IMG/VR virus record: IMGVR_UViG_3300042350_004528
Location: 1-64,000 of that record
Direction: 5' to 3' (one strand)
DNA length: 64,000 nt
Below are positions 19,461 through 44,729 of this stretch, in pieces (within the stretch, counting starts at the first letter, position 1; each line of letters begins with the position of its first letter). Below the pieces are notes generated by a model. That model was not told the origin of the DNA. It saw only the letters and a program-made list of their open reading frames with translations, and did no database searches. A program made the position numbers and the translations under genes.

Positions 19461-21320
19461 TTATAATCTTATTTTGACATTAAATGACACAACATCATAC
19501 CAATACTTTTTAATTGGTTGTGTTGGTTTACATACAGCTAATAAATTACCCTCTGCGTCATGAATGCCTAATTGTGTTATTATTATCGGATATAGGTTTT
19601 GGTCTTCAGTTTTTAAATTTGCGAAATCAGCAGTCGCAACTGTATTCATTAGCTCTTTTGCTGTATCATTTGTTGATTTAAAAAACTCATCTGACGATGC
19701 CAAACAAACAATATTTAATGATTTTTCTGTGTTGTAACTTATATATTGTGCTCCCGCATCTAAAGTATAAAGTGTTCCTCCAGTTGGATCGAACACAAAT
19801 TGTGTACTATCCCAAACAACGTTAGAATTTTCATCGAGTGTGGTGATCATTTCAGCTGGATCTGTTTTTACAAAACCTCTGGTAGTTCCAGTTGCTGGTG
19901 TTCCATTCACATCATAATTTTTATTAGCGGTAAATAATGAGGCGGTACTAGATTTTGTAACAGTTCCACTAAATACGTTTCTAAAATATGAATCGACTAC
20001 CTTTGGGTGGGTGACAACAATAAACCCTTTATCTAGTGCAACAAATCCAATACACTCATCATTATTGTAATCATACACAGCCTTTTCTTGTGAATTTGGG
20101 TTAAACACTCTTGTCCCGTCTATTAAATCTGTGTAACCAGCCGACCAAGAACCGAAGTTAGCTCCAGATGGTACTTTAATTCTATCTGAAAATAAAGGTA
20201 CAACGTTACTTTCGTATGTGGTTGTTATTAAATCTGGTCTAATCCCAATATCTTTAACAGAAAAATCAATCTCACTTAAAACTCTATCTAAGTTTCTTGT
20301 TGTTAGATTTTTCTTATTATATGTCCCATATGCTTCCAGTTGTACTGGCGTGACACCATAGGTATAAAAACCTAATCTAGCGTCAACAACATTAGAGGTG
20401 GTTCCAGTATAATAAGGTAGTTCGAATTTAACAGATTTACCATCTATTAACTCACCATATGCACCGTTAGGAATTTCAAATATCAAATATAATTCATTTT
20501 GTATCGGTAAGGCAGCTTTATTTGTTGGTGTATAGTCATACGAACCTACTGGTTGTAATGCCGTTCCGTAGTACTCACCAGTATACCCAGTTGTTGGGTG
20601 GACAACTAAATTTACGGAGGTTGCACCAGTTGTTGTGTGAGGAGTCCAAATATATTTTGTATTATCAATTATTGTATCATATGTCGTTCCACTTGTTATC
20701 GATAAAGTACCATATTGGCTCCTAGTATATTTTTTCATTTCCTCATCGGAAACTGGTAAATTTAATGATTTTAATAAGTTCGCAAAAATAGTATTAGTAT
20801 CATTTCTTTTTACAAACATACCTCGAATAAAATTTGTTGGGTATGTAGACCCAGTTACTTTATGTGTAACACTAACTATACCATCATCTAAATCAAATGG
20901 AATTGACTCATTAACAACAACAGCGCTTTCAATTGGTTTTAATACAGAGTAAACCGATGGGTTAACATCATACTCAATATAACCTCTACAATCACCCCCG
21001 AATTGGGATGTTGAAAATGACAAATCCTGATATTGTAATATCATAAAATTAGCAAAACCATCCGCCTCTTGTACAGATTCTTGTGACGTATTTTGTTCAA
21101 AACTCTGAAAAAAAGCTGGAACAGTGTTTGTTGATATTGCATTTAATTTGGTTTTTAAACCACTAGTTGATGGTACATCTGTATGTACAATTAAAACTTG
21201 TTGGTTAATTGTTGGTGTGTAGGTTGGTAAAGAATTTAAATAAAAAGTGGCCAAACCGTCAGCACCACCGTTTGTTTTTCTTCTATAAAATGGAATTCTT
21301 ACTTTTAATATTGCGCTCAT
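19461..21320 (-). CDS. virion baseplate/fibre protein with the C-terminal half of a tail-collar (DUF3751-like) domain
   Basis: ITQLGIHDAEGNLLAVCKPTQPIKK; paralogous to the C-terminus of 24260..26974. Confidence 0.65.
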   Translation of the reverse strand: MSAILKVRIPFYRRKTNGGADGLATFYLNSLPTYTPTINQQVLIVHTDVPSTSGLKTKLNAISTNTVPAFFQSFEQNTSQESVQEADGFANFMILQYQDLSFSTSQFGGDCRGYIEYDVNPSVYSVLKPIESAVVVNESIPFDLDDGIVSVTHKVTGSTYPTNFIRGMFVKRNDTNTIFANLLKSLNLPVSDEEMKKYTRSQYGTLSITSGTTYDTIIDNTKYIWTPHTTTGATSVNLVVHPTTGYTGEYYGTALQPVGSYDYTPTNKAALPIQNELYLIFEIPNGAYGELIDGKSVKFELPYYTGTTSNVVDARLGFYTYGVTPVQLEAYGTYNKKNLTTRNLDRVLSEIDFSVKDIGIRPDLITTTYESNVVPLFSDRIKVPSGANFGSWSAGYTDLIDGTRVFNPNSQEKAVYDYNNDECIGFVALDKGFIVVTHPKVVDSYFRNVFSGTVTKSSTASLFTANKNYDVNGTPATGTTRGFVKTDPAEMITTLDENSNVVWDSTQFVFDPTGGTLYTLDAGAQYISYNTEKSLNIVCLASSDEFFKSTNDTAKELMNTVATADFANLKTEDQNLYPIIITQLGIHDAEGNLLAVCKPTQPIKKYWYDVVSFNVKIRL

Positions 21321-21325
21321 TTTAA

Positions 21326-21568
21326 TTATTGTCTAATAATTTGATTTTTTATTGTAACATTTTTGGATAAAGAGTAAACATTATCATTATAATCTCCTGT
21401 CAAATCACTAACCATTTGTGTAACAAATAGATTAGCGTTATAATTAACATCCTCATCCGATATTGAAAATGAACTTGGGATGAACCCTTGCTCAAGAAGT
21501 CTTCTTCGACCTAAATCCGTTAAGTAAACTTTCATTTCAACGGTGGTTCCTGTATCTATTAAACCCAT
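21326..21568 (-). CDS. small virion protein, N-terminal half of a tail-collar-like domain
   Basis: VYLTDLGRRRL...FSISDEDVNY, paralogous to the N-termini of 23674..24258 and 24260..26974. Confidence 0.65.
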   Translation of the reverse strand: MGLIDTGTTVEMKVYLTDLGRRRLLEQGFIPSSFSISDEDVNYNANLFVTQMVSDLTGDYNDNVYSLSKNVTIKNQIIRQ

Positions 21569-21606
21569 TTTATCGTTTTTTTAATTTTAGTTATTGTTTT
21601 TTATTA

Positions 21607-21613
21607 ATAAATA
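21607..21613 (-). promoter_or_regulatory. TATTTAT putative late promoter element
   Basis: Intergenic, upstream of 21568. Confidence 0.45.
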
Positions 21614-21618
21614 GTTTC

Positions 21619-22176
21619 TTATGAAATTTTTATTGGTTTTTGGAAAACAGATTTAGTACCCACTTTATTTATAAAACTTGTAGTTGGTACTTTATTATTA
21701 AATGTACCCTGATACAATTCAGTATTTGGTACCAATGAACCAGACACCGTTAATTGTGTATTTGAATAATTATTATGTACTTTTTTATGATATAACTTTA
21801 ACGTTCTAGTGCTTTCAATATTTAAAATATGATATACATTTGGATTCATATTTAAATCATCGGCGGTGGCGTCCATAAAATAAATTAAATCGTAAGCAAA
21901 TTTGTATTTTTTTGCTAATTCATGAAATAATTTAAAGAATTCTGTTAAATCATCTAAATCAACAATTTTTTCAGCCATCACAAAAAAATCAATGTCGTTG
22001 TAAGTTGAGGCTGATTTTGTGATATATGCTAAATACCCACCAGACAAATAAACTTCAAAATTATAATTGCTGTTTAATTGTTTAAATTCAATAATAAATT
22101 GATCGTATTCGTTTTTTCTTAGGGGATCATTTATCACCACATCGGAACGATCTTTAAAATAATAAGTATATCTCAT
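21619..22176 (-). CDS. Pol-beta superfamily nucleotidyltransferase (185 aa; start moved to the ATG at 22176)
   Basis: VYLSGGY...YNDIDFFV with a third acidic residue in YDLIY; ATG 4 nt after the upstream stop. Confidence 0.7.
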   Translation of the reverse strand: MRYTYYFKDRSDVVINDPLRKNEYDQFIIEFKQLNSNYNFEVYLSGGYLAYITKSASTYNDIDFFVMAEKIVDLDDLTEFFKLFHELAKKYKFAYDLIYFMDATADDLNMNPNVYHILNIESTRTLKLYHKKVHNNYSNTQLTVSGSLVPNTELYQGTFNNKVPTTSFINKVGTKSVFQKPIKIS

Positions 22177-22180
22177 AAAA

Positions 22181-22846
22181 TTAATAACCAAAACCACTGG
22201 TACCAGATGTTGAGGGGGCCAACGATTGAGGAACATAGCCAGTGTTAATTGTGTTTATTGTAAGAACCAACGTATCGTTAATCGCTTGCGTATATTCTCT
22301 ATTAGCAAAACATTTTATATTAAAAGATATGTCAATAGTTCCTTTTGTTTTATTTGGGTTTAAATTTGATTTACCAAAGTAATGAATGTCTAATCTATTT
22401 AAATTTAAAACTGTATAACTTGCTGACATTTCTAATGATTGAAATGGATTTAAAATTATATTGGATCCGTTAACATATTCATTTAATCTACCAATAGTTA
22501 ATTTACCAATCGTTTGGCGCCTAAAACTTAAAATATAATCTTCATATGTGTAATTACCAACAACTCTTGTTTCACTTAAAACCGAAGTTAAATTCGCTGA
22601 AGGATAACCATTTTCCCTTCGCATTCTAATTGAATTGAAATATAATCCGTTAAAATAGATCGGTTTATTATTTTTATTTAAAATATAAAATAATCCATCG
22701 TTATAGGATGTATAGGATTTTCCTAATTCAGTTACGCTAACACCGTGTGTATTAATATAAAAATCAGCTTTTTTGATCATAAAATCAAAAACTGGTTGTT
22801 TTTCGTTTATCCTACTGTATAACTGTGTATATACTAATGAAGCCAT
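22181..22846 (-). CDS. putative virion structural protein (221 aa)
   Basis: Beta-rich N/T/Y composition; within the baseplate cluster. Confidence 0.6.
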   Translation of the reverse strand: MASLVYTQLYSRINEKQPVFDFMIKKADFYINTHGVSVTELGKSYTSYNDGLFYILNKNNKPIYFNGLYFNSIRMRRENGYPSANLTSVLSETRVVGNYTYEDYILSFRRQTIGKLTIGRLNEYVNGSNIILNPFQSLEMSASYTVLNLNRLDIHYFGKSNLNPNKTKGTIDISFNIKCFANREYTQAINDTLVLTINTINTGYVPQSLAPSTSGTSGFGY

Positions 22847-22847
22847 A

Positions 22848-23681
22848 TTATGAAACGTTAGAATTACTTGAAGGCGAAAGGGCTTGCTCGTAATATGTGA
22901 GCGTATTTGACATTAATTCAACCGCCTCAGATGTTGCGTATGTACCAGTACCCGCAACCCCAATATTATAATATCTTATTGTAAGTTTATAGGTTTTACT
23001 ATTTACTGCAACCTCATCAAAATTTGGGAATTCCGCACTAACCCTAAAATTATATTTTTCTGGAGCCGTTTGATAACCATTAAATAAGGTATTTACTGTT
23101 GTTGTACCAGTATATGCCATGTCCACACAATCTTCGCTATTTAATCCAGTTGTTAATTCAATACCATAACCACCAGTGCTAATCGTGCTAGTTTTGTCAG
23201 CGCCTGTAACAGCAACCCAGTTACCTCCAGAGTATTTTTCCAAATTAGAAAGTTCCATTGGTATCATATTTCCACCAATAGTCACATATAATTTAACACG
23301 TAATCTATCTAAAATTTTTTTAGTGTTTGTCGCATTTATACCTGGTAATGTATAACCACTTAATGTTGAGCCGTAAAATCTAAAATAAAATGTAAACCTA
23401 TTGTAATACATTTTATTTGCTATTAAACCATCTTTAATTGAAAATTCTGAGTATTTGTAAATTGAATTTGATTTTTGTAAAGAATTTGAACCGATAATAC
23501 TAGTGGGTTCCTGGTATCTAACATTTTTTAAATCAAATAAATTTGATTCCGCTTTATTAGCTGGGAAAAAATCATTATCAAACAATAATTGTGACGTGTA
23601 ATTAACGGTTGTTAAAGTAACATTTGGTTTATAAGTCAAATATAAACCGTTAATACCTTTTATGTTGAATTGTTTACTCAT
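22848..23681 (-). CDS. putative virion structural protein (277 aa)
   Basis: T/G/N-rich; within the baseplate cluster. Confidence 0.6.
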   Translation of the reverse strand: MSKQFNIKGINGLYLTYKPNVTLTTVNYTSQLLFDNDFFPANKAESNLFDLKNVRYQEPTSIIGSNSLQKSNSIYKYSEFSIKDGLIANKMYYNRFTFYFRFYGSTLSGYTLPGINATNTKKILDRLRVKLYVTIGGNMIPMELSNLEKYSGGNWVAVTGADKTSTISTGGYGIELTTGLNSEDCVDMAYTGTTTVNTLFNGYQTAPEKYNFRVSAEFPNFDEVAVNSKTYKLTIRYYNIGVAGTGTYATSEAVELMSNTLTYYEQALSPSSNSNVS

Positions 23682-24258
23682 TATTAATATAGGTTAATAT
23701 TTCAAGTGTTTGATTTGATGTTAAATCAGGTTCATACATTAAATATTCTTTTTGGGTTGTTGTTTTAATTCCAAATAAAGCTCTTTTATAAATTAAATTA
23801 TCTACTTTTTTACCCCTAAGTGGCACTTGAACAAAAACGTCATTTATATAATCATCATTTTGTGATGAACCGTTTGCCAAAGATGTTTTGTAACCACTTA
23901 CGTGGTTTATTGTTGGTATTGGCTGTAATGATATATTTGTTGAATTAAATACCCTTATTTTATCCCAATAAGCGCTATTTGTTGGAACGTATTCGGTTGA
24001 TGGCGATGAAGGGTTAATCGAAACTTTTTTATAAAAATTACCAGAATATTTAACAATACTTCCAACACTATAAGTTGTCCCCGTAACCCAAGTTAAAACC
24101 TCATTTTGTGAAGGATCAAAAATTTGATAATTAGCATCAGAATCCACTAAAGAGAAATATGCTATGGAATCTTTGAACCCTCCGTCAAAAAATTTTTCTT
24201 TACCTAAATCAGTTAGGTAAACCTCAAAAGTGTTTGTATTGTCGTATATAAATCCCAT
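23674..24258 (-). CDS. virion protein with tail-collar-like N-terminus and a CBM5/12-like module
   Basis: VYLTDLGKEKF; WVTGTTYSVGSIVKYSGNFY...W. Confidence 0.6.
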   Translation of the reverse strand: MGFIYDNTNTFEVYLTDLGKEKFFDGGFKDSIAYFSLVDSDANYQIFDPSQNEVLTWVTGTTYSVGSIVKYSGNFYKKVSINPSSPSTEYVPTNSAYWDKIRVFNSTNISLQPIPTINHVSGYKTSLANGSSQNDDYINDVFVQVPLRGKKVDNLIYKRALFGIKTTTQKEYLMYEPDLTSNQTLEILTYINNE

Positions 24259-24259
24259 T

Positions 24260-26974
24260 TTAAAAATCTATTGTCGCTTGTATTATTAATACATCTGAGT
24301 TATATTTTCTTGTTAGCGGCTGACTAAATTTACCGATTGCGACTAAATCACCGTCCGAATCATAAACAGCCATTTCAGTAAATGCAACTTTATCTTGTTC
24401 TGGGTTAAAAGTTGGATTTGAGGTGTTTATATATTTGTTTGGTAAAATATTACAAGTTATTAGGCTTTTGTAAATCGTTGCTTTTATATCAGTTTCTATA
24501 TTTCCAAAAAAGAAAGTTTCATCACCAAATGTATGCCCAGTAATATTACTAACTGATGGTAAAGAAATAAAGTCATTTATATCATATGTTGTACCCTCAC
24601 TAACATCTAATAAACTTTTATCTAAATTAACTCTTAAATTTTGTATGTTAGCTGCCGTTAGTGCATTGCTAATTGGGTTATTACCAGCACCAGCATTATC
24701 TAAATAAAATAATGATAATATTGATCCATCCGATGGGGTAAAAGTTAATTCAACTCGTCTTGTTGCGGTCGTACCAGTTGGTATAACCCCATAGTTATTT
24801 GCACTAATTAATTGACCATTATAAAATAAATAAACAACATTATTATTTGGTTGTTTATTTAAAGTTAAACATACAGTTGATCCAATTAAATAAATACCGT
24901 CATTAAAATCATTACCAATTGGCACCCCACCGATGGGTACTGTTATGTCTTGTCTTATAGTTGAGGATGTATTTGTTTCACCTATTAAATAATGAAACTG
25001 CATTACATCACCAGAAGTTAAAATACCCGATGTAAATTGAATAACAGATGTGTTATTTGGGCCGCTAAGTACATTTAATGGATATTTCCAATAATCACCA
25101 TCTGTACCTAAATTGGCGAATGATGAAGCTTGTTTTAAAATTAAACCATTTTGTGAAACTATAACATCACCAATTTCTTGTTCAGCTAACGTATATTGAT
25201 TTGTGACAAATGATGTTGGGTATATTGCCGTTTCATTTTTTAATTCAAAATTATCACAAAGTGATGTAATATTACTTAAACACCCAGTACCGCCAATAAA
25301 ATTATTAACATTTAAATAATTCCAATCTGCTGGGTTTGGTTTACCATTTACTGGGGTTTTTTGCCACAAAAGTAAAATAGATCCCGCTCTATAACCATAA
25401 CCTTCAGTATCATTAAAATCCATCAAAAACCCAAATTCGCTATAATTAGGGTCGCTTGAGTTTTTTGGAAACTCGAATATTACGTCTTTAACAGTACCGC
25501 TATTATTGTTTACGGTTGAATAGTTTTCACAATGTAACCCAGTTAATCCATCACTATCAGTAAATAAATAAGTAATATGTAAAGCCTCATTGTTTAATAA
25601 ACAACCTGTTAAATTAGATCCAGGGCAAACACCAGGTTCGGTTAAAGTTAATTTTGGTGTTGGTAATGTCCAATTTCTATTTGCTTTGTATGACATTACA
25701 GTTAATAACTCTTGATCCTCAATTATTATTATTTTTTGATCAATTAAAACTTTACCAACAACAGTTTTAATTGTTTCTTGATCCACCAAATCATAATATC
25801 TAATGGTATTATTTGTACCCATTGTTTTTAGTACAGAGTCACATAAAAACGTATAGCCAATTGAATCTGCTAAACTAACACCGCCAAATTGTTGTTTATG
25901 CCACATTATGTGCGGTATTTTTAATTTTAATGTATTTTTATAAAAACCTTCGGCGTAATAATTACTAACCGAGTTGTTTGTATAGTGTATAACACCAACT
26001 TTATCTATTAAATTATTTTCTAAAAAATAATCATAATTAATTGCGGTGCCCCAATAATTTCTAGATTCGGCGGTATATTTTCCTTTATAGGTTGTACTAT
26101 CTAATCCAATAACATCTTCAATTGTTAATATATTCATATTCCAAACTGGAACATCGTCATTTGATAATGTACAGTTTGAGGTAAAGTCAAGTAAACCTCC
26201 ACTCCAATACGCAATTGGAGTTTCGTTGTCATAATAATCTTTTATTGTATTTTTACCTGGATAAATAAATGCGTCAGCCAAATACGAATTAAAGTTTGGT
26301 AATTCCCTATCTAACTCAAATGTAACACCTGTGGTAAATCCAGTTGTAAAACCAGTTGTACTTCCAGTTGTTAAACCGCTTATATCAAAAATTCCATTTC
26401 CATTTATACTTTGTATAATGTACATTAAATATGGTACTGGGTAGCTCGTAATTTCTTCTGTTAATTCGTTTGAAACATATGAATTAGTGTAACCACTTGT
26501 TTTAAATTTAATAAATAAAAAATCACCTTTATTTATGCTTTCTCTATAAGAATTAACAACCGTCCTAGATGTGTCGTATAAAACAATTTCTGTCGCCGTT
26601 GTATGTGTTGAGCCTGTTAAATTACCTATTAACCAAAGAGATGTATCTAATTCTGTAACACCAGAATTTAAATTAAAATTAAAAAACCCCCTTTCTTTTG
26701 CGGCGGTATAAACTTCGTTTTGCACTGAAGTTAAAAGTGATATGGGTTGTTGATAAACCGTACCCTCATATGGTACCTGATATTGTATATCGTGTTGCCT
26801 ATCAACAGGACGTAAAACATTTATTAAAACTGGATTATCCGAACTATAATCCATTTCGCCATCACCAAGTGCAAATGTCGAAAAATTTAAACCTCCAGAT
26901 GATAAGTTTTTTCTACCCGTGTCGGTTAGTTTTAAATTTACTAAAGGGTCGGTTTTTTTTATAATGTAACTCAT
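24260..26974 (-). CDS. baseplate/tail-fibre protein (904 aa) with a DUF3751-like domain interrupted by a large insert
   Basis: N-terminal LTDTGRKNL..FALGDG; C-terminal TEMAVYDSDGDLVAIGKFSQPL. Confidence 0.7.
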   Translation of the reverse strand: MSYIIKKTDPLVNLKLTDTGRKNLSSGGLNFSTFALGDGEMDYSSDNPVLINVLRPVDRQHDIQYQVPYEGTVYQQPISLLTSVQNEVYTAAKERGFFNFNLNSGVTELDTSLWLIGNLTGSTHTTATEIVLYDTSRTVVNSYRESINKGDFLFIKFKTSGYTNSYVSNELTEEITSYPVPYLMYIIQSINGNGIFDISGLTTGSTTGFTTGFTTGVTFELDRELPNFNSYLADAFIYPGKNTIKDYYDNETPIAYWSGGLLDFTSNCTLSNDDVPVWNMNILTIEDVIGLDSTTYKGKYTAESRNYWGTAINYDYFLENNLIDKVGVIHYTNNSVSNYYAEGFYKNTLKLKIPHIMWHKQQFGGVSLADSIGYTFLCDSVLKTMGTNNTIRYYDLVDQETIKTVVGKVLIDQKIIIIEDQELLTVMSYKANRNWTLPTPKLTLTEPGVCPGSNLTGCLLNNEALHITYLFTDSDGLTGLHCENYSTVNNNSGTVKDVIFEFPKNSSDPNYSEFGFLMDFNDTEGYGYRAGSILLLWQKTPVNGKPNPADWNYLNVNNFIGGTGCLSNITSLCDNFELKNETAIYPTSFVTNQYTLAEQEIGDVIVSQNGLILKQASSFANLGTDGDYWKYPLNVLSGPNNTSVIQFTSGILTSGDVMQFHYLIGETNTSSTIRQDITVPIGGVPIGNDFNDGIYLIGSTVCLTLNKQPNNNVVYLFYNGQLISANNYGVIPTGTTATRRVELTFTPSDGSILSLFYLDNAGAGNNPISNALTAANIQNLRVNLDKSLLDVSEGTTYDINDFISLPSVSNITGHTFGDETFFFGNIETDIKATIYKSLITCNILPNKYINTSNPTFNPEQDKVAFTEMAVYDSDGDLVAIGKFSQPLTRKYNSDVLIIQATIDF
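26321..26380 (-). repeat. in-frame 12-nt tandem repeat encoding SGLT-TGST-TGFT-TGFT-TGVT
   Basis: Five consecutive [ST]GxT units. Confidence 0.8.
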
Positions 26975-26987
26975 TTACTATTTTACA

Positions 26988-26994
26988 ATAAATA
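26988..26994 (-). promoter_or_regulatory. TATTTAT putative late promoter element
   Basis: Intergenic, upstream of the 904-aa gene. Confidence 0.5.
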
Positions 26995-27008
26995 GATTTA
27001 TTTTAATT

Positions 27009-30000
27009 TTATAGTGTTGCTGTATTAATATTAATCGCTTTTACGTTAAAAATTGCGGTCGCATCTGCAACATCAGTTTTAACATCAGTTACTGAAACAA
27101 TACCATTAAGATTAATAAATATTGTTCTATTAGCGGTCACATTTTTCAACGTGATTACTCTAGTTTCTAAATTAGCTGTTTGAACAAATGTTGTCTGAAC
27201 TGTATTTGTATTTATCACTTGATTATTAACAAATAATGGTGTTGCATCAACAAAAGCAGAGCCAAATTTTGTTTGTTTTCTTTGAGTCGTGTATGTTATT
27301 TCAACCTCAAAGTTTGTTTCTGGTATAACATCATACTTAGTATCAAATACAGTGTTTTTAGTTACGCTTGTAGACGTGATTTTTTGTGCTAACGTATTAT
27401 CAGTTTGTTTAATAGTTAATGTGGCATTAGCTTGTCCATTTTGTGTAACAACAACTCTTACAGTATAAGGTAATATTTCAATATCTTCTGGTGTAAAATT
27501 CGCAGTTTGAGTTAAACCTTGTTGTCTATCTAATTTATCAATATCAGTATCAAATAAAACACCAAATATTGTTGTAGCTGTTTTCCCACATGGGTTTGAA
27601 ATTTTTAATTTTCCTATAAACTCGCCCGTTAATGGGTAACCAACTTCATCTTTTTGCGGAAAATAATCCATTATAACGTCATTACCAATAACCCTAAAAT
27701 CAACTAAACCTGTTGTGTTAGCAGAAATTCTATTTGGGTCGGTCGCATCATAAAATTTATTTAAACCAGATATTAGTTTATTATTAATTGTGGATCCACT
27801 AAATGACCTACTGGTAAATCCACTTTTTAACGTAAGATTATCTCTAAAAAAATGAAGTGATTTTTTAACTGAATTAGTTAAACTTTCTATCTTTGATTCA
27901 AATACAGTAACTCGTGTTCTATCTTTAAAAAATTTAAAATTATTTACCAAACAAAAATCAGACTCAGACCAATTAGTAGTATCTTCAAAAGGTTGAGCTG
28001 GATAAGTACCCAATGGGGAACCCCCAATAAACTTATATAAAACACCTCTATTAACTGTATATTTGTAACCTATGTATTTTGATGTGTTATCATAAGTTAT
28101 ACCAGTTGTTTCATCCGCAATAAACAACGTTGGGTTATTTTTTTCAGTATATCTACCAATTCTTTCAAACAATGGATAAATTGAAGATGAATCCGTTAAA
28201 AATGGATGATAATAAGTAAGATAATTAAACGAATTTAACGGAAATGATGGTCTTAGTTTTATATTTGTTTTATTTAATCTGGTCTGATTAAAATAATCCT
28301 TATAATTATCGGTTTCGTAATAAGTATTTGATTCTAAAAGTGCTGGATAATAAACTTCCCAGTCAACCCCAACAACTGGCGGTGTGCCAGCTGCGGCTGT
28401 ACTTATTTTTCTATAAGTTAAATCATTATGTTTTATAATGGCACCTGGTGCGTATAGCGTCCCAGAATTATATGCCGAATACGGTAGATAATATGGAACG
28501 TATGCGTCTGGCCCGTAATAACGACCAGAAAATGAACTAAAATATGATCTTAATATTTTTTTATTAATATTTACATCGTATTCGTTATAGGACACGTATG
28601 AATCATCCATAAAACAATAACCATTTATTAGAACATTGTTCCATCTACCACCAAATGTTACACCAGAAACAGTTGTACCAGTTGATATAAATGGTATACC
28701 AAATTCACTCACAGGTAGTGTTTTAGGTAATCTTGCTGCCGTTGTTGGTATCGCAACATACCCATCTAACGGAAACCAAGATCCACCAACAGATTCGACC
28801 CAGTTGGTTAAACCACCAAGTGATTTGTGATCAAATAAATCGTTAACGCTAGTTATACGCCTCCATTCGGTTGTACCAGTTGACCCACTTGTCGCAAGAT
28901 ATGGCGCGGCATTTGTATGGTCTTTTTTTGCCACAAAAAATCTATACACGGTTGGGGCTAATACTGTTTCATCGGTAACTCCAGACAAAACAAAATCACC
29001 TTTAAAATACTTTTTAGTTGAATCCCATTTTAGCGGCTTTTGATATATGAACCTAAAAAATTCGTCACTACCCCCAGGATTTGGATATGAACCTAAAATT
29101 ATATCCCCAAAATTATATTCACTTACAACCGTTGGGTCATAGCTTATAAAATTTTTATTAATATAATCCGAAACATTTGGGTTACTTGTTGTTAGTAACG
29201 GTGAGTGTTCATAACCCCATGGTGTGAAATTAGTTGGGTTATATTTTTCAATTTCAATAAAACATGATCTCGACCCCCTTGGTCTATAAATTTCGTGTAT
29301 TTCACCTTGGACGAGTGTCGAAGCTGACGTATCTTCTAATTTATAGCAATGATCAATGTTAATATCGTTAACACACACATATAACCTATAAACCGAATTT
29401 GTTTGTACAGTTTGACCCGTTGGGCTATCCACCACAATTTTATAGTCATCAATATTAACTTTTACAATATCATTTAATTCATAGTTAACTATTTGGGCAT
29501 TAAATTCTGGTACGACATCAAGTATTTTTTTATAAATTTCAGTGTTATACACATCATTCTCTAATTTGTATAAGCTATATGATGACGTACCTAATGAATT
29601 AAAAGAGTACCTTTTTTTGTTTTTAATTTCACTAATTATAGGGTTTCCATAATTAAACAGAGTATAATCATTTAATCCTAAATCATAACCTTTAAAGCTA
29701 CCTAGAGTATCTTTGGTTGCCGTACCAAGTTCAACATTGTTGTAAAAACTATACTTTGGTGAGTAAGTAAATTCTCTGTTATGCGTGTTTTGCCTAATTC
29801 TTACATTTTTACCGATTGTTATCGCATTTGTGACATCATTATTATCAGTTTGTCTAACAGAATTACCCAAATAATAATCACTAAAATTTAATTCGTGTTC
29901 GATAGTTGCGGTTTTTACACCTATGTTTTTACCGCCAGAAACAGAAACAAGGCCTGTTGTTGAAAAATTATCACTTTTACTTCTAATAGTAAAGGTGAAA

Positions 30001-33000
30001 TTAACCTTATCAAAATTTATCTTTTTATCGTATTCACTCGAGTCAAAAACAATGTTATTTTGAGAATTGGTTTCAAAATAAGATAAAAATAATTTATTGT
30101 AATAATAATTAGGATCGATCGAATGCTCAATATTTAAAAAAGGAACATTAACATATTTTTTTTCTGTTAATCTAAGTATTAAATTGTTGGTATCTAAATT
30201 TGATAAATTATAAATTGGTTTAATCGATAAACCATCTAAGTACTCACCTCTGGCCGAAAATCCAGAATTTAATAACACTCTAAATCTAGGGTCATTTAAT
30301 TGATTAAAAGAAGCCTCATCGACCTCTTCATGAATATAATCTATTTCTTCATATCTAGATAATGTGCAAGCTAAATCTATTGGTTCAATGACTAAATAAA
30401 TTTTTTCACCAGAATTAAAAAATCCAGTATATTCAAAAACATATTGTCTTAAGTTTGCATCGTCAGATCCATTAAATGTAAATGACTGGGTATCATAAAT
30501 AAAACCTAAAGAATTTATCAATTTAATGTTTATGGTTTGATTTATATTTTCAATAGATTCGAAATATAAATCAAATTTAAAACTTAAATAACTATTTTTT
30601 GCGACTAAATAATGCCCTGGTGTTGTGTTTACCAAACTTAACTCATCACCAATTGTTGTAAAATTTTCATTTAAAGATTGAATTGATATATAGTTGTTTG
30701 AATTTGGCTGTAAAAGAATACTATTTTCTAAAGTGTGAATGAACGCCCCATCATCATTTAAAGTATAAAATGGGCCTATTTTTGTTTGGTCTAACCCATA
30801 AAAACCCTCAAAGTTTACAGTCACAGAATCTGATATAAATAACTCACCGTTTATAATATTATCCTTTACTTTATATGTTGTTTGTGGCGTTGCCCCACTA
30901 AATATGTGGCCCAAATTAAGTGATTTTGTTAGATTTACAGAATATGAAGCTCTACTTGGATCTAGTTTAATTTTTGAAATATAAGCTGGATCAATATGCA
31001 TAAAAGGATCCGTTTTTGTTCTATCCTGATATCTTTCATACATACCACCAGTGGTTCCAGTTGAAATTGTTGATAAATTAACGGTCACGCCAGTAGTTCC
31101 AGGACTCACAAAAGACGCTGAATTTGCTGTTGCTATGTGTTTTAAACCAGTTGGGGTTGTAATTGGATATGTTGTACCCGTTGCCTCAAATGTATCCCCA
31201 GTAACTAAATATATTTTACTACCAACAACCAAATTTTCTTTATTTGTTGGATGTATGTTTGCGATAATTTCTCCCTTATAATATGTAAATCCAGTTGCCC
31301 ACGAAAATCTTTTTTCATATGGGGTAGCCCACTTTGATATTTCACCATAAATTAATCCTGATGGTCTTAATGGGGTGTGGTTCATACTATAACCATAAAA
31401 CCTAGGTTGTTTAATAGTTTGTGTGATACCTTCTTCATCATTATAAGTCCTAAATGTATTATGTACTAAAGCTGGTGTAATTGTCCTACCAGTAAAATCA
31501 TAGTAACAGACATGTGGCCTTGGTGGTGGGCAATCAAAATTAACCCGAATACCCAAATAGGCTAAACCACGTCCAATTGAGTTTATATAATATGATCTTT
31601 CAATTGATCTAACATCTAAAGACAAGGTATCCGCAAACGTTATAGTTCTAGAATCAACATCAATTGGTATGTGTTCCCATATCATTCTGGTATCACCAGA
31701 TGCGTTTGTTACTGTTGCTTTATTGGGTGGGTATCTACTTTCAATTGTTGACCCAGTTCCAGCCGTATGTATGTCGGGAATTGAACCCGTATCATTAAAC
31801 ATGTACCTAGTATTCAATCTATATAACTTACTATTGTATACAACAAAAACACCATATCTTTGAGTTGATGACGCATAGCCAGATTGATTTATATTACCAT
31901 TAAATAAGCTATCATCCCCGTAGTCAATACCGCTTTGCCAAATATGGAAACTACCCTCACTTTCATCGCAATACTCAAACATCGTATAGTGAACACCAAA
32001 ATATTCATTAATAGTTGGGTCTGTTCCAGTTATTTTGGTGCCTGGTTTACCAGAAATATTAAACGTTATTGGTTCACCGTCAATTTTGGCCCCAAGTTTT
32101 CCGACATTTTCTGTAACATTTGTCGTGCCAAGATAAACAGGTTTAAGTGCTTTTTGTTGAAATTCAGAACCATCTGTACCTAACCAAGATACATCATTAT
32201 TTAAACCATGTTTATATGCAAATTTATTATCTAAAAAAGTTGAATTTTGTATTTTTTTACCAGCATTAACAACGGATGTTGCTGGAACAAATTGCTGTAT
32301 TAATTTAACCCAAGAAGAATCAAATTTATTTAAAAACTCTAAACTTCTCATGCTATCAATTGGCGTGGTTGTTGTTTTTAAATAATCAAAATAAATCTTT
32401 GATAAAGTTGGATATGTTTTAATCGTTTTTCTATTTTTTGGATTTATAAACGTGTCTAACGATTTTTTAATAAATTGATTAAATGTTAAATTTGTTGAGT
32501 CAAATTTATTTAATATATTCAAATCGGAATTGACAATCCCTATATTTCTAGCGTATTGCCTATAAACAGGAATATCAAATATTCGATTTGATGATAAATA
32601 AACCTCAAGTTCTTTAGAATTAATTGATAATCTAATGTCATTTGATTCGTACTCAGTAAAACCATTTCTATCGTCTTTGTAATAGGTTGTTGGTAATTCG
32701 TTGTATACCCAACTTTTTACGTTATCGATTGTTCTATATACATCGAAAAGAAAAACGTTTTCATATTTTTTATACTGATTAACATATCTTTGGCCAAAAT
32801 CGAATCTACCAATATTAGACTTATCTTCTGTGATATAGCCCCCGTCTTCTTGATATCTAACGTTTGTTGGTACGGTTGGAAAACCTTTTGAATCAAAAGG
32901 TACTCTTTGTAATAAAATTTCTGGATCGTCAATAATTGTCTGGCCATAAATTTTATTTAAAACATCTGGTGTGTTTAAAGGTCTTTCGGCCAAATAAATA

Positions 33001-34673
33001 TACTCGTTTAACTCAAATATTTCATCAGGTAAACCCACCAGTCTCAAAATAAACTCGATAGATTTTCTGGTACCTTTTGATTTGTATAGATAAAATGAGT
33101 TAATTAAGATTCTTCTCCATAATTCAATGTCAATTTCCGCTGGTGTTGTGCCTTTTTCAACATCATCAAGTTCAGTTGAAAACAAAGAATCGATTAAAGT
33201 ATTTTCATCTTCAATTTCAAATGTATTAAAACCAAGCATTGTTGCGTAGTTTTTAATTAAAAGATCTGGAACGTTTTCGATTTTATCATAACTAACATTT
33301 CGCATAAAAGTTATGCCATCAATATATCTTTTAATATCGTCAAACGTTTTACCGTATAATTGAAATAATAAATTGGCTTTACGATCGCTAGTATCAAATT
33401 CTTTTAAGGAGTCGGTTGTTAAAAATCTTGAGATTAAATTTGTTTTAATACTATCATACGAATCAGCAAAATCATTTAAAGTCGTTGTGTAGTCATCAAA
33501 TTTACTACTAAACATATCGATGTTAAAATCATCGTACATTGGGAAAATTAAAGTTTCTTTAACAGTTCGAACTTGCCCACTGTCATCCTCTGATGGATAA
33601 ACGAACTCACTAATATATTCACCAGTATTTGGATCTTTATTTAAAAGAAACGAAGCTAAATCTGATAAATTATTAAAAAAATCATTGTATACTTTACTTT
33701 TAGGTTTTATATAAAATCTTACGTTAACAACATTGTTTACATCAACAATATCTCCAAATGGATTACCATCTACGGTTAATCGAATACCAGTCGCGTCATC
33801 ATTATTGTTTTGTGGAAATTGCGCGGAAATTATGGGATACTCAACACCGTTGTAATATAAAACATATTCTTTATGTGTTTTAGTAAAATTTCTGTATTTT
33901 GTTATAGTTTCACTATTATCCAAAGTACTTCCAGAACTATTATATTCAATACCATATGGGTTAAATAATCCATAAAGATTTACTTTAAAAGAAGATCTAT
34001 TTTCAAGTGGGTATGTTGCATAATTAGAAACAGATGGTGTTGTTATAGATATTGGTTCGGCTTTTATTGCTCCTGGAAAATTATTGTATATTTCAATTAT
34101 AACGTTTTTTAATCTTTCTTTTAAAGATGAAAATAAAACATAATTATCTAATTTTCTTCTGTCAAATAAAACTTTTACCGTTAAGTTTTCGGTTACTTTT
34201 TGTTTTAAAGCTTCCACGTATTCTTTACCCTCAAAATAGGGTAGATTTCTTTGTGCTATACTTTCAACTGTAAAACTTTTTACAGCATCGTTTTGTGCGG
34301 CCTCATTTACTTGAATTTGTAATTGTGATGCCTGCGCCCCTTGTTGTACGCTTTTTTGAATTGAAAAGTTACCTAGGGTAAAAAAAGGATCACCTTGTAT
34401 TTCGTCTTTGGCGTTCGCAAATTGTAAACCAACTAATTTACTGCCAAAAGTATCGCTACCAAAAGCACCTATTTTACCTTGTATTGTCCTATATCTCAAG
34501 GCTCTTTCATATTGTACAAAAGATGAGCATGGTACATATTTAACGTCACCATTTATGATATAAGTGCGATATCCGTCACAACCAAGTGCTTTTGACGCAT
34601 CAATTGCTTCTTGTGGTGTATCGTACAGATCCCTAATTATCTGATTATTCGTTGTAAAACTAAGATCAGCCAT
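27009..34673 (-). CDS. giant baseplate wedge protein (T4 gp7 / P2 gpI-like core) with CBM-like repeats (2554 aa)
   Basis: LYKSKGTRKSIEFILRLVG and IQQFVPA motifs; W/Y-x4-Y-x2-G-x2-[IV] repeats; DUF3721-like N-terminus. Confidence 0.75.
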   Translation of the reverse strand: MADLSFTTNNQIIRDLYDTPQEAIDASKALGCDGYRTYIINGDVKYVPCSSFVQYERALRYRTIQGKIGAFGSDTFGSKLVGLQFANAKDEIQGDPFFTLGNFSIQKSVQQGAQASQLQIQVNEAAQNDAVKSFTVESIAQRNLPYFEGKEYVEALKQKVTENLTVKVLFDRRKLDNYVLFSSLKERLKNVIIEIYNNFPGAIKAEPISITTPSVSNYATYPLENRSSFKVNLYGLFNPYGIEYNSSGSTLDNSETITKYRNFTKTHKEYVLYYNGVEYPIISAQFPQNNNDDATGIRLTVDGNPFGDIVDVNNVVNVRFYIKPKSKVYNDFFNNLSDLASFLLNKDPNTGEYISEFVYPSEDDSGQVRTVKETLIFPMYDDFNIDMFSSKFDDYTTTLNDFADSYDSIKTNLISRFLTTDSLKEFDTSDRKANLLFQLYGKTFDDIKRYIDGITFMRNVSYDKIENVPDLLIKNYATMLGFNTFEIEDENTLIDSLFSTELDDVEKGTTPAEIDIELWRRILINSFYLYKSKGTRKSIEFILRLVGLPDEIFELNEYIYLAERPLNTPDVLNKIYGQTIIDDPEILLQRVPFDSKGFPTVPTNVRYQEDGGYITEDKSNIGRFDFGQRYVNQYKKYENVFLFDVYRTIDNVKSWVYNELPTTYYKDDRNGFTEYESNDIRLSINSKELEVYLSSNRIFDIPVYRQYARNIGIVNSDLNILNKFDSTNLTFNQFIKKSLDTFINPKNRKTIKTYPTLSKIYFDYLKTTTTPIDSMRSLEFLNKFDSSWVKLIQQFVPATSVVNAGKKIQNSTFLDNKFAYKHGLNNDVSWLGTDGSEFQQKALKPVYLGTTNVTENVGKLGAKIDGEPITFNISGKPGTKITGTDPTINEYFGVHYTMFEYCDESEGSFHIWQSGIDYGDDSLFNGNINQSGYASSTQRYGVFVVYNSKLYRLNTRYMFNDTGSIPDIHTAGTGSTIESRYPPNKATVTNASGDTRMIWEHIPIDVDSRTITFADTLSLDVRSIERSYYINSIGRGLAYLGIRVNFDCPPPRPHVCYYDFTGRTITPALVHNTFRTYNDEEGITQTIKQPRFYGYSMNHTPLRPSGLIYGEISKWATPYEKRFSWATGFTYYKGEIIANIHPTNKENLVVGSKIYLVTGDTFEATGTTYPITTPTGLKHIATANSASFVSPGTTGVTVNLSTISTGTTGGMYERYQDRTKTDPFMHIDPAYISKIKLDPSRASYSVNLTKSLNLGHIFSGATPQTTYKVKDNIINGELFISDSVTVNFEGFYGLDQTKIGPFYTLNDDGAFIHTLENSILLQPNSNNYISIQSLNENFTTIGDELSLVNTTPGHYLVAKNSYLSFKFDLYFESIENINQTINIKLINSLGFIYDTQSFTFNGSDDANLRQYVFEYTGFFNSGEKIYLVIEPIDLACTLSRYEEIDYIHEEVDEASFNQLNDPRFRVLLNSGFSARGEYLDGLSIKPIYNLSNLDTNNLILRLTEKKYVNVPFLNIEHSIDPNYYYNKLFLSYFETNSQNNIVFDSSEYDKKINFDKVNFTFTIRSKSDNFSTTGLVSVSGGKNIGVKTATIEHELNFSDYYLGNSVRQTDNNDVTNAITIGKNVRIRQNTHNREFTYSPKYSFYNNVELGTATKDTLGSFKGYDLGLNDYTLFNYGNPIISEIKNKKRYSFNSLGTSSYSLYKLENDVYNTEIYKKILDVVPEFNAQIVNYELNDIVKVNIDDYKIVVDSPTGQTVQTNSVYRLYVCVNDINIDHCYKLEDTSASTLVQGEIHEIYRPRGSRSCFIEIEKYNPTNFTPWGYEHSPLLTTSNPNVSDYINKNFISYDPTVVSEYNFGDIILGSYPNPGGSDEFFRFIYQKPLKWDSTKKYFKGDFVLSGVTDETVLAPTVYRFFVAKKDHTNAAPYLATSGSTGTTEWRRITSVNDLFDHKSLGGLTNWVESVGGSWFPLDGYVAIPTTAARLPKTLPVSEFGIPFISTGTTVSGVTFGGRWNNVLINGYCFMDDSYVSYNEYDVNINKKILRSYFSSFSGRYYGPDAYVPYYLPYSAYNSGTLYAPGAIIKHNDLTYRKISTAAAGTPPVVGVDWEVYYPALLESNTYYETDNYKDYFNQTRLNKTNIKLRPSFPLNSFNYLTYYHPFLTDSSSIYPLFERIGRYTEKNNPTLFIADETTGITYDNTSKYIGYKYTVNRGVLYKFIGGSPLGTYPAQPFEDTTNWSESDFCLVNNFKFFKDRTRVTVFESKIESLTNSVKKSLHFFRDNLTLKSGFTSRSFSGSTINNKLISGLNKFYDATDPNRISANTTGLVDFRVIGNDVIMDYFPQKDEVGYPLTGEFIGKLKISNPCGKTATTIFGVLFDTDIDKLDRQQGLTQTANFTPEDIEILPYTVRVVVTQNGQANATLTIKQTDNTLAQKITSTSVTKNTVFDTKYDVIPETNFEVEITYTTQRKQTKFGSAFVDATPLFVNNQVINTNTVQTTFVQTANLETRVITLKNVTANRTIFINLNGIVSVTDVKTDVADATAIFNVKAININTATL

Positions 34674-42907: not shown

Positions 42908-44728
42908 TTAAACGCCTAACAATGTGTTTTGTGTGGTTGGTATAACCACAATATCTTTTTCTGGTGTTCTTAATTGTAAAATTTGATCCGCATTTACACG
43001 AATAACCCCACCAGTTATATCAATTTCACCTGTGTTAACATTTATGTAGAGTGAATCGTCAAGTTTACTTGATGAATAATCTCCACCAACTTTGTTAAAT
43101 ACCTTAATATAGTTAATATTTAAAACACCATCAATCTGTGAAAGTTTTTTAATAACGTCCCCAACAAGATAACTTTGCCCTAACTGCATTTTATCCTTGG
43201 AAAACTCATCTCTTAATATCGCGGCAATGTTAGCAATTGCATTTATTTGCGATCCAGCCTCGCTTAAAATTGATATTTCAAACGATAAATCAATCACATC
43301 GGCTGGTTTTACAACAACATAATCATTTATCATTCTATATCTCGATAAATAATTTGCTACGTTTTCTAGAACAGTTGATGAAACAATATTTGTTAACGAA
43401 CCATTTGTATCTGTCGATAAAACACCAACGTTAATTTTATTTTGAATTTGTGAGACGCTTACTTTTGCTGGAACACCAAATTTAGCTGGCATACCGAGTA
43501 AAATGGCTTTATAATCTTGCAATGTGACAGCTCTATTTTGAGCAGAAAAATTGTACGAAATATAGTTTCTTAACTCCTCAATACTTGGAGCCTCACCACC
43601 CCCAATTGCTGGTGTAACATTTGTAACCGTTAGCGAACCTTGCACAATTGAATTAATTTGGGCCTCAGGGCCGTTCAGTTGCATAGAAACAAGTCCTGTG
43701 GTATCTATTGTACCAACACCGACATTTGTGTCCTCACCACCTCCAATCCTGTATTTAATATACATCGTTGTATTATTGATTGGGGCAAAACCTAAACCTG
43801 GGTTACTTAAAAAACTTTTAAGATTAAAAGTATTAGCATCGACAAAATCATCTAATATGTCTAAACCCTGGTCGGTCAAAGAACCGAAAGTTAACACACA
43901 AAATCCATTTGGTGTAAATTCTTTTACAAATCGCCTATCAACTTTTGTGTAGTCACCTTTATAAACACCATTTACTGGCGCCACAGTTCTGTCTTCAACA
44001 AAGATTGTATCTTCAGCCAAAGACGCAACTTCGTACCATTTATTTGTGTTTGAATTAAATTCTAAATTTGTTGGTATTGTTTGAAACGATGTACCATTTT
44101 TATGAATAATAGAATCAATAGATAATATATTATTTTCTGGCAATGTTATTTGATAAAATGATCTTGTATTTGAAATTTTTTGTGTAAAAATTCTACTTGC
44201 CCCAGCCACAACTATACCAGTTTTTGTTATCCTATATGCAGTTAAAATACCATTTGTGTAAATTGGGATTTTAGTTCTATCAATTTTACCCGAGATATTA
44301 AAATTTGATGCAAAATCAATATCATATAACAACTCGAAACTAACATCCCCAGATAAAAATTGTGAACCTGCATACATTAATGGTAAGTACCTTCTATCCT
44401 CAGCATCACCCCTAATGGGTACCTGGACGCTAAATTGACATACAGCAACGCTTGCTGATCTGGTTGGTAATTTTAAACCATACGTTTTCGCAATATTAAA
44501 AAGTGATTGTCTTTCTTGAGCGTAATCCAATACAGTTTCTTGTAAAGCCCTATCAATATGAAAATGAAGGTTATCCGCAATTGCAGCATTTAAATCTAAA
44601 AATACGGATAAAATTGACGCATCGTTGAAATTTTGCACCAAATTTGGGTAGTACTGTTTAATAAAATTGATTTGTTCGGTTTTTAATGACGAAAAATCGC
44701 GTTTACTATAATTAATTTGTTTAGCCAT
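42908..44728 (-). CDS. baseplate wedge subunit (T4 gp6 / baseplate J-like)
   Basis: YSKRDF, AQER.S..NIAKTYG, YRIGGG..TN, QNRAVTLQDY. Confidence 0.9.
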   Translation of the reverse strand: MAKQINYSKRDFSSLKTEQINFIKQYYPNLVQNFNDASILSVFLDLNAAIADNLHFHIDRALQETVLDYAQERQSLFNIAKTYGLKLPTRSASVAVCQFSVQVPIRGDAEDRRYLPLMYAGSQFLSGDVSFELLYDIDFASNFNISGKIDRTKIPIYTNGILTAYRITKTGIVVAGASRIFTQKISNTRSFYQITLPENNILSIDSIIHKNGTSFQTIPTNLEFNSNTNKWYEVASLAEDTIFVEDRTVAPVNGVYKGDYTKVDRRFVKEFTPNGFCVLTFGSLTDQGLDILDDFVDANTFNLKSFLSNPGLGFAPINNTTMYIKYRIGGGEDTNVGVGTIDTTGLVSMQLNGPEAQINSIVQGSLTVTNVTPAIGGGEAPSIEELRNYISYNFSAQNRAVTLQDYKAILLGMPAKFGVPAKVSVSQIQNKINVGVLSTDTNGSLTNIVSSTVLENVANYLSRYRMINDYVVVKPADVIDLSFEISILSEAGSQINAIANIAAILRDEFSKDKMQLGQSYLVGDVIKKLSQIDGVLNINYIKVFNKVGGDYSSSKLDDSLYINVNTGEIDITGGVIRVNADQILQLRTPEKDIVVIPTTQNTLLGV

Positions 44729-44729
44729 T

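Follow-up and report, generated by a model that had tools for sequence, protein, structure and literature searches.

A Thr-Gly-x-Thr motif over-represented on the outer tail proteins of an uncultured freshwater-type jumbo phage and its relatives, a possible modification tag

Why should the outer tail proteins of a phage carry about seven times too many copies of one four-residue motif, [S/T]-G-x-T? The question was raised by a 64,000-nucleotide stretch of DNA (positions 1 to 64,000 of IMG/VR record IMGVR_UViG_3300042350_004528, hereafter the window) from an uncultured freshwater-type jumbo phage. The original prediction was that the motif is strongly enriched only in outer baseplate and fibre proteins, that it varies freely at x and is scattered over unrelated folds, and that it marks sites where a phage-encoded system decorates exposed virion proteins, by glycosylation or another modification. 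We first asked whether the enrichment is real, then whether it is shared by relatives, and finally what might read it. The features of the window are collected in Table 1.

Table 1. Motif-bearing and control features of the window, with [ST]GxT counts observed and expected
Positions	Strand	Feature	Observed	Expected	Further observations
27009..34673	-	2554-aa giant outer baseplate/fibre protein	19	2.6	Across 50 aligned family members, motifs concentrate in residues ~900-1300 and ~1600-2300 and are nearly absent elsewhere
30888..31757	-	Motif-dense segment 1 of the giant protein (residues 973-1262)	9		In the AF2 model sites are mostly in coil, several with the final T starting a beta-strand
27789..29420	-	Motif-dense segment 2 of the giant protein (residues 1752-2295)	9		TNF/C1q-like and CBM-like jelly-roll matches somewhere in the modelled fragment (residues 940-2100), not localised within it
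24260..26974	-	904-aa outer baseplate protein	10	1.4	120 homologs average 7.4 against 1.2 expected; AF2 pLDDT 82; Foldseek gives only a weak match to the Klebsiella phage KP1 baseplate cup
26321..26380	-	Tandem (TGxT)x5 array, residues 199-218 of the 904-aa protein, encoded by a 12-nt DNA tandem repeat, in a low-confidence loop	5		pLDDT below 50 at residues 205-211; most relatives have 2 copies
19461..21320	-	619-aa protein	7	0.9	Orthologs in relatives are also enriched
22848..23681	-	277-aa protein	2	0.5	
23674..24258	-	194-aa protein	1		Motif lies inside a CBM_5_12-like hairpin (below Pfam's threshold)
21326..21568	-	80-aa protein	1		Motif at residues 6-9
53418..53702	-	94-aa ORF next to the hub gene	2	0.2	Absent from the original prediction
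54702..61931	-	2409-aa hub protein (DUF2272), negative control with similar Ser/Thr content	1	1.7	29 [ST]G dipeptides
42908..45146	-	gp6-like and gp25-like inner baseplate genes, negative controls	0		The gp6-like neighbour has 0 or 1 in the related loci where it is listed

The observation is confirmed and is stronger than first described, the manual counts of the original prediction being exact for every protein it listed. In an unbiased scan of about 48,000 tripeptide and gapped patterns, TGxT was the top outlier (27 observed, 3.3 expected, p = 4e-16) and SGxT ranked third, whereas other T/G combinations were only mildly raised (about 12 against 3.3). The excess is not owing to whole-protein or local composition, as local block shuffles of 8 to 100 residues gave 6.2 to 9.7 motifs against 40 observed (9.7 for the 8-residue blocks), and mirror and permuted forms of the motif sat at expectation. 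Codons vary, Ser uses both codon families, and a T-ending bias at the first codon is a general effect before Gly codons, hence the signal is at the protein level rather than a DNA repeat or recombination signal. Position 0 is S or T, position 1 is G, x is free, and position 3 is T but not S (TGxS, 0 observed against 2.6 expected), D or N at position 0 is not enriched. T4 fibre proteins lack the excess, hence it is not a general property of phage fibres.

The restriction to outer baseplate and fibre proteins was, however, too narrow. Besides the 94-aa ORF within the window, further motif-rich proteins were found in the same phage outside it, including a 2485-aa giant (8 against 1.75 expected), a 491-aa neck-region protein (8 against 0.57) and, mildly, the sheath (4 against 1.1). 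A putative tube protein had none, and beta-rich proteins of 974 and 932 aa showed no excess. Non-virion proteins were not significantly depleted of the motif (3 against 5.5 expected), so avoidance in cytoplasmic proteins is not supported.

The enrichment was detected in all 69 related IMG/VR loci carrying the module, down to 29–35% identity, and is replicated in hundreds of homologs. In alignments, x is the least conserved column (0.20–0.23), against 0.38–0.50 for positions 0, 1 and 3 and 0.25–0.35 for the immediate flanks. Individual sites turn over while the load is maintained, the motif occupying 111 alignment columns in 113 homologs, with a hyper-rich clade (15–18 motifs) having gained scattered point sites. 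Motif load also rises and falls together across unrelated virion proteins of one genome (Spearman 0.74 between two proteins across 18 genomes). At least two verified lineages, independent on the tree, are depleted across the whole module, while a syntenic relative with similar GC is rich throughout, and the tree requires at least four switches. The contigs of the depleted lineages are jgi Ga0643543_0000010, logan ERR4067840_178899, jgi Ga0502773_0000146 and logan SRR22868765_211740. Megablast and tblastn searches with the module found no cultured relatives, and PHROGs and Pfam gave essentially no annotation of the module proteins.

The motifs do not map to one repeat fold. Two of the motif-bearing families share no profile similarity (hhalign of A1 against A2, probability 0.2%), and flanking positions carry little information. 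In two AF2 models the motif Gly is in coil at 21 of 25 sites, as read from secondary-structure strings rather than coordinates, with several sites in low-pLDDT loops. The contexts vary, including coil, strand end, helix start, a low-confidence loop and one tight hairpin. W-started CBM-like contexts account for 2 of 40 motifs and collagen-like GxTGxT for 2 of 40, the tandem array has a period of four rather than three, and CBM5/12 hairpins, collagen-like GxT and the flavodoxin loop together explain at most about 7 of 40 sites.

Walking about 60 kb past the window revealed a glycan cluster of about 12 kb between the DNA polymerase and PhoH genes. It includes at least six glycosyltransferase-like genes, NeuB-like, PseF-like and NeuD-like genes of a nonulosonic-acid pathway, an RfaE-II-like gene and an O-methyltransferase. 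A 408-aa glycosyltransferase of this phage has only relatives of 26–35% identity. The cluster could serve other targets. Phage glycosyltransferases often act on DNA or host glycans, and a dUTPase and an HD-like protein sit inside the cluster.

We then compared cluster content with motif load. The one motif-depleted phage inspected for this region (L087) lacks, in the sequence up to NeuB, a single GT2 gene (GT2_5, 223 aa, PF13712) and its 282-aa neighbour but keeps the rest of the cluster, although relocation of GT2_5 beyond NeuB is not excluded. All 13 syntenic IMG/VR loci with an enriched proxy protein have GT2_5 and the 282-aa gene. However, two motif-rich loci (L193 and L228) have no GT2_5 within 10 kb, locus L223 has GT2_5 with a weak proxy, and L087 itself retains a 545-aa protein with 4 motifs against 0.55 expected. 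The link rests on one loss, and wider sampling does not establish it. The nonulosonic-acid, Maf-like and GT29 genes do not track the motif, the nonulosonic-acid and Maf-like genes being absent from the syntenic region near the polymerase in motif-rich loci L092–L100 yet present in depleted L087. A 205-aa ORF inside the module (weak SidM_N hit) was rejected as the modifying enzyme, as its homolog is present in one depleted genome (L014) but absent from another (L015) and from a motif-rich one (L017).

Taken together, the interpretation of the original prediction is partly supported. Several of the checks set out with it came out in its favour, namely survival of the enrichment after composition-preserving shuffles, the lack of a single repeat fold and a sugar-nucleotide and glycosyltransferase cluster elsewhere in the genome, and the genome-level gain and loss of motifs fits a trans-acting reader. 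We suggest that [S/T]-G-x-T is a short linear motif kept by selection in exposed loops of the distal appendage proteins (the outer baseplate and fibre proteins, the second giant protein, the neck-region protein and probably the outer sheath domains) and read in trans. The most likely reader would be a phage-encoded cytoplasmic glycosyltransferase that O-glycosylates one of the hydroxyl residues before or during assembly, giving the tail appendages a glycan coat. The analysis itself establishes the motif, its specificity, its loop location, its conservation footprint, its turnover, its coordinated gain and loss across proteins of one genome and the large phage-encoded glycan cluster. That the motif is modified at all, that the modification is a sugar and which enzyme adds it are inferences, with no direct evidence of modification, and GT2_5 and the 282-aa protein are the only candidates with any comparative support. 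A modification sequon is the best reading, held tentatively, and is unproven. No sequon of this form turned up in the searchable literature.

If the motif is a modification site, phage virion glycosylation would not be confined to a few actinobacteriophages but would be a widespread, sequence-predictable feature of abundant aquatic phages, sitting on the proteins that contact the host. This would affect how host range, adsorption, particle stability and defence evasion are understood, supply a portable sequon-and-enzyme pair for engineering, and give a function to some of the many unexplained glycosyltransferases in large phage genomes. In its furthest form, which is unlikely on present evidence but not excluded, the motif would be the acceptor sequon of a phage-encoded O-glycosylation system coating the tail appendages of a very large clade of aquatic T4-like and jumbo phages, freshwater and marine, with sequon number tuned lineage by lineage like a viral glycan shield, and would be the first defined glycosylation sequon for bacteriophage virions. 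Even if structural or a binding loop, it is a strong conserved signature which, in the genomes examined here, distinguishes the distal appendage proteins from the inner baseplate, hub and non-virion proteins in sequences that otherwise lack annotation.

Among the alternatives, a structural micro-motif survives best, although we consider it unlikely. It would be an S/T-capped Gly turn leading into a beta-strand that begins with Thr, favoured in the beta-rich appendage domains of this phage lineage without any trans-acting reader. About a third of modelled sites (7–8 of 25) have [ST]-G-x in coil and T(+3) as the first or second strand residue, and an aromatic residue follows the motif in 10 of 40 cases against 0.8 expected. 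Where the motif is lost, G is most often replaced by N, S, T or D and position 0 often by N, as expected at turn positions, and one or two sites sit in CBM5/12-like hairpins. A loop-to-strand motif is therefore not excluded. Against this, the structural contexts vary, the families have no detectable common fold, and T4 fibres and the beta-rich hub, gp6-like, 974-aa and 932-aa proteins lack the excess. Furthermore, whole-module loss occurs with folds and synteny retained, no strongly enriched turn-equivalent pattern replaces the motif ([STDN][GN]xT is only about 1.5–2x in depleted genomes), and D or N at position 0 is not favoured although Asx turns are structurally equivalent.

Two further readings appear improbable. 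The motifs could be small ligand-binding loops making anion, phosphate or glycan contacts, giving many weak adhesion points for host surface polymers whose number would change with the host. TGxT is the core of a known phosphate-binding loop (PMC7084853), the motifs lie on distal, receptor-facing proteins with CBM-like and TNF-like jelly-roll domains, and coordinated change with lineage could reflect host switches. However, a four-residue loop in varied contexts is unlikely to form a defined pocket, and the sheath and neck-region protein also carry the motif. Alternatively, the motif could be read by something other than a modifying enzyme, such as an assembly chaperone or decoration protein docking on it, or its frequency could be shaped by a host protease or defence sensor differing between host lineages. 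The coordination and independent losses require only some trans-acting factor, and no enzyme could be firmly tied to the motif. Yet no candidate partner was identified, the small ORFs within the module vary in presence and do not track the motif, and dozens of copies per virion protein is unusual for a docking site. An artefact of Thr/Gly-rich low-complexity sequence or of a DNA repeat is refuted, since 35 motifs against 7.8 expected remain without the tandem array, alongside the pattern scan and the replication in relatives.

The features of this phage (a contig of about 299 kb, gp6, gp25 and sheath genes, a sigma-70-like factor, PhoH and multiple glycosyltransferases) match those of moraphages, freshwater jumbo phages of 200–307 kb with T4-like structural genes, a sigma factor, PhoH and several core glycosyltransferase groups (PMC12619734), and a homolog lies on a 307,114-bp contig, although this comparison rests on such features alone and not on a marker-gene phylogeny. 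In mycobacteriophages, phage-encoded glycosyltransferases decorate structural virion proteins, with a proposed role in shielding exposed surfaces (Freeman et al. 2023, as summarised in PMC12619734). There the glycans are reported at the C-termini of capsid and tail-tube subunits, whereas the candidate sites here are internal loops of baseplate, fibre and neck appendage proteins defined by a four-residue motif, the putative tube protein has none (the capsid protein was not reached), modification is inferred only, and the hosts are predicted Bacteroidota rather than Actinobacteria.

The Bacteroidota general O-glycosylation sequon, D-(S/T)-(A/I/L/V/M/T), belongs to the predicted host phylum and also targets Ser/Thr, but is periplasmic and is not enriched in these proteins (19 against 20.0 expected). 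The flavodoxin FMN phosphate-binding loop, (T/S)-x-T-G-x-T (PMC7084853), contains the T-G-x-T core and was the only TGxT motif found in our literature search. It is a single catalytic-site loop in a strand-loop-helix context, whereas here there are dozens of copies in varied loops, only 3 of 40 have the extended form and only one site (residue 160 of the 904-aa protein) has that context. Cytoplasmic O-glycosylation of flagellins with nonulosonic acids by Maf/FlmG-type enzymes (PMC7591256, PMC13317340) would likewise be a Ser/Thr-directed modification of a surface appendage protein, and the phage has NeuB-like, PseF-like and NeuD-like genes and a weak MptE/DUF115 (Maf-type domain, PF01973) hit. 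However, the literature searched described no strict sequon for flagellins, the nonulosonic-acid and MptE-like genes do not track the motif across relatives, and the MptE-like protein is only 220 aa. Maf proteins are about 600 aa. N-glycan sequons (N-x-S/T) on viral surface glycoproteins differ in chemistry and motif, a phage has no secretory pathway, and N-x-S/T itself is at expectation here (79 against 74.9). Nevertheless, as in the glycan shield, [S/T]-G-x-T is a short motif with a free middle position, located in loops predicted here to be exposed, whose positions turn over while their number is maintained or expanded in lineages.

The 64-kb window has a GC content of about 31% with almost all genes on the minus strand, and corresponds to roughly the first 64 kb of a contig of about 299 kb from an uncultured jumbo myovirus (IMGVR_UViG_3300042350_004528). 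It encodes gp6-like and gp25-like baseplate proteins, ribonucleotide reductase, a DnaB-like helicase, a UvsX-like recombinase, a gp32-like protein, a primase, a sigma-70-like factor with regions 1.2, 2 and 4, and a 2409-aa hub protein with DUF2272. No cultured relative was found.

We first recounted the [ST]GxT motif in each protein, and every count in the original prediction proved exact. As the motif had been chosen after the data were seen, we then scanned about 48,000 contiguous and gapped tripeptide patterns. TGxT was by far the strongest pattern in the outer proteins (27 observed, 3.3 expected, p=4e-16) and SGxT was third, with nothing comparable in the other window proteins. Shuffling within blocks of only 8 residues still gave 9.7±2.9 motifs against 40 observed, the mirror motif and five permutations sat at expectation, and without the tandem array in the 904-aa protein the count was 35 against 7.8.

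Observed and expected numbers of [ST]GxT motifs in window proteins
Protein	Observed	Expected
2554 aa	19	2.6
904 aa	10	1.4
619 aa	7	0.9
277 aa	2	0.5
194 aa	1	0.2
80 aa	1	0.07
2409-aa hub	1 (among 29 [ST]G dipeptides)	1.7
gp6-like	0	0.4
gp25-like	0	0.1

Codons within the motif vary freely, including both Ser codon families. T-ending codons are preferred at position 0, however this reflects a strong codon-context bias across all coding regions of the window, where codons before a Gly codon end in T 70% of the time against about 40% otherwise, hence the signal is at the protein level. The motif is also sharp: position 0 takes S or T but not D, N or A, position 1 takes G, position 3 takes T and not S (TGxS 0 observed, 2.6 expected), and position x is free. 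T4 baseplate and fibre proteins showed no comparable excess.

The enrichment extends well beyond this genome. The 904-aa protein has more than 360 homologs, of which the 120 listed average 7.4 motifs against 1.2 expected, and the giant 2554-aa protein has 52 homologs, most with 9 to 31 motifs against 1.2 to 3.5 expected. All 69 module loci recovered from IMG/VR are enriched, including those with only 29–35% identity (for example 18 vs 2.2, 22 vs 2.9 and 20 vs 2.5), whereas the adjacent gp6-like protein is at or near zero in the loci where it is listed.

Within the same phage but outside the window, three more proteins carry the motif. A second giant protein of 2485 aa, without family annotation, has 8 motifs against 1.75 expected, all in its last ~730 residues (residues 1761–2297), a 491-aa protein between the gp13-like neck gene and the DNA polymerase has 8 against 0.57, with homologs enriched across distant relatives, and the 1030-aa sheath has 4 against 1.1. 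The tube, the inner baseplate proteins and the 932-aa and 974-aa proteins have none. The 974-aa protein is encoded by the last ORF of the window, which is cut off by the window end, and its gene is followed by a 106-aa gene and then the 2485-aa gene. The 932-aa protein has a peptidase/endolysin-like domain at residues ~726–844 and is probably a tail-associated lysin. Pooled inner virion proteins (7 vs 6.2) and non-virion proteins (3 vs 5.5) were at expectation.

Locations of features in the window and in further retrieved loci (L018, L024, L026 and L027, same phage outside the window; L087, motif-depleted relative; L089, another relative)
Sequence	Coordinates	Feature
Window	12235-13032	Sigma-70 family factor
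Window	21619-22236	205-aa ORF, overlapping its neighbour by 56 nt
Window	23674-24258	194-aa protein
Window	26321-26377	12-nt tandem DNA repeat encoding (T-T-G-x)n
Window	28374-31856	Giant protein residues 940-2100
Window, continued in L018	61937-64000; L018:7071-9995	974-aa protein
L024	10001-12799	932-aa virion-module protein
L024	12816-20273	2485-aa giant protein
L026	8060-9535	491-aa protein
L027	4480-16750	Glycan cluster
L087	20433-22511	692-aa fusion of GT8 and GT29 domains plus a different methyltransferase
L089	3468-6344	958-aa SNF2 helicase
Protein P0202	–	1392-aa polymerase homolog

Positions flanking the motif carry little information, apart from a tendency for an aromatic residue to follow it. 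In the giant 2554-aa protein the motifs are confined to residues ~900–1300 and ~1600–2300, which does not simply follow sequence divergence. AlphaFold models of the 904-aa protein (pLDDT 82) and of residues 940–2100 of the giant protein (pLDDT 75) place the motif Gly in predicted coil at 21 of 25 sites, in varied contexts that include plain loops, a low-confidence loop holding the tandem array, two strand ends, one helix start and one tight hairpin. In 7–8 of these sites the final Thr is the first or second residue of a beta-strand. The tandem array is present as two copies in most relatives and five in the window's clade, hence copy number varies, probably by slippage. The two families share no profile similarity and their fold matches differ, with the one weakly matching a phage baseplate-cup protein and the other matching TNF/C1q-like and CBM-like jelly rolls. 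Residues 56–79 of the 194-aa protein also match CBM_5_12 weakly (21.7 bits, cut-off 26.2), the match starting at its TGTT motif.

Across both families, positions 0, 1 and 3 are more conserved (0.38–0.50) than their immediate flanks (0.25–0.35), and x is the least conserved column (0.20–0.23). Individual sites are kept in only about 40–60% of homologs, the motif occupies 111 alignment columns, and one clade reached 15–18 motifs through scattered point gains. Motif load in the 904-like and giant proteins correlates across 18 genomes (Spearman 0.74), in which the pairing of the two proteins was inferred from the sizes of their contigs and confirmed directly for three genomes. In two lineages that are independent on the family tree every module gene is depleted (locus L014: 3, 1, 0, 0...; locus L015: 5, 1, 0, 0, 0, 0, 3), whereas a syntenic relative with similar GC is rich throughout (locus L017: 27, 11, 1, 2, 0, 1, 9). 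The tree needs at least four switches between rich and poor. A relaxed turn-equivalent pattern is only 1.5–2x enriched in the depleted genomes, hence the motif is lost there and not replaced. This combination points to a factor acting in trans on the motif.

To find such a factor, we searched for modifying enzymes. No glycosyltransferase was found among the window ORFs scanned, which left out about 20 small ORFs. The 205-aa ORF has a weak SidM_N (AMPylation domain) hit below threshold, however it is variably present in relatives and does not track the motif. Walking along the genome by exact protein matches reached a glycan cluster of about 12 kb between the DNA polymerase and PhoH. This includes a 408-aa glycosyltransferase (PHROG 7162, E=3e-45), GT2_5 (223 aa, PF13712, with a confidently predicted GT-A fold common in phages), a weak MptE/DUF115-like protein, a PseF-like cytidylyltransferase, a GT29 sialyltransferase-like protein, an unknown 282-aa protein and two more GT2-like proteins, with an HD-like protein and a dUTPase embedded among them. 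The remaining members are a faint aminotransferase hit, a NeuD-family acetyltransferase, an O-methyltransferase, a NeuB-like synthase and an RfaE-II-like nucleotidyltransferase. In the wider set of relatives, the L089 SNF2 helicase had LAGLIDADG/Hom_end hits and one polymerase homolog had intein-type Pfam domains, both of which look like intein or homing-endonuclease insertions in replication genes.

We then compared cluster content with motif load. The phage whose 904-aa homolog has no motif (L087, 201,916-bp contig) keeps most of the cluster but lacks GT2_5 and the 282-aa gene, at least up to NeuB where the locus ends, and its GT8–GT29 fusion and different methyltransferase replace the GT29/GT2 part. 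An intermediate phage and a rich phage have both genes. Using the 491-aa protein as a local proxy for motif load, all 13 syntenic IMG/VR loci with an enriched proxy carry GT2_5. However, in a wider metagenomic sample two enriched loci with full flanks have no GT2_5 within 10 kb and one locus with GT2_5 has a weak proxy, and L087 itself still has a 545-aa protein with 4 motifs against 0.55 expected. The GT2_5 link is therefore only suggestive. The MptE-like, cytidylyltransferase and NeuB genes are missing from several enriched phages, hence the nonulosonic-acid branch does not track the motif.

The observation is thus confirmed and extended, as a highly specific, clade-wide protein motif concentrated in predicted loops of distal virion appendage proteins, whose evolution looks like that of a motif read in trans. 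The proposal that it is a modification sequon, probably a glycosylation site, is partly supported: it remains the best available explanation and gains from the discovery of a large phage glycan cluster, but is unproven. The motif, its spread and its pattern of loss are results of the analysis, whereas its covalent modification, the nature of any modification and the enzyme responsible are inferred or, in the last case, not identified on present evidence. No matching sequon was found in the searchable literature. A structural loop-to-strand capping motif is the main rival, and ligand-binding loops and a non-enzymatic reader are lesser ones. An artefact is excluded.

Some of the proteins and the phage as a whole can be compared with described systems. 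The model of giant protein residues 940–2100 contains a predicted TNF/C1q-like jelly roll resembling the Bacillus exosporium proteins BxpB/ExsFA and the binding domain of the cyanophage A-1(L) short tail fibre, in addition to its CBM-like matches. One homolog lies on a 307,114-bp contig, and although membership is an inference only, the features of this phage fit the freshwater ‘moraphage’ lineage, which has predicted Flavobacteriia hosts and four core glycosyltransferase groups (PMC12619734).
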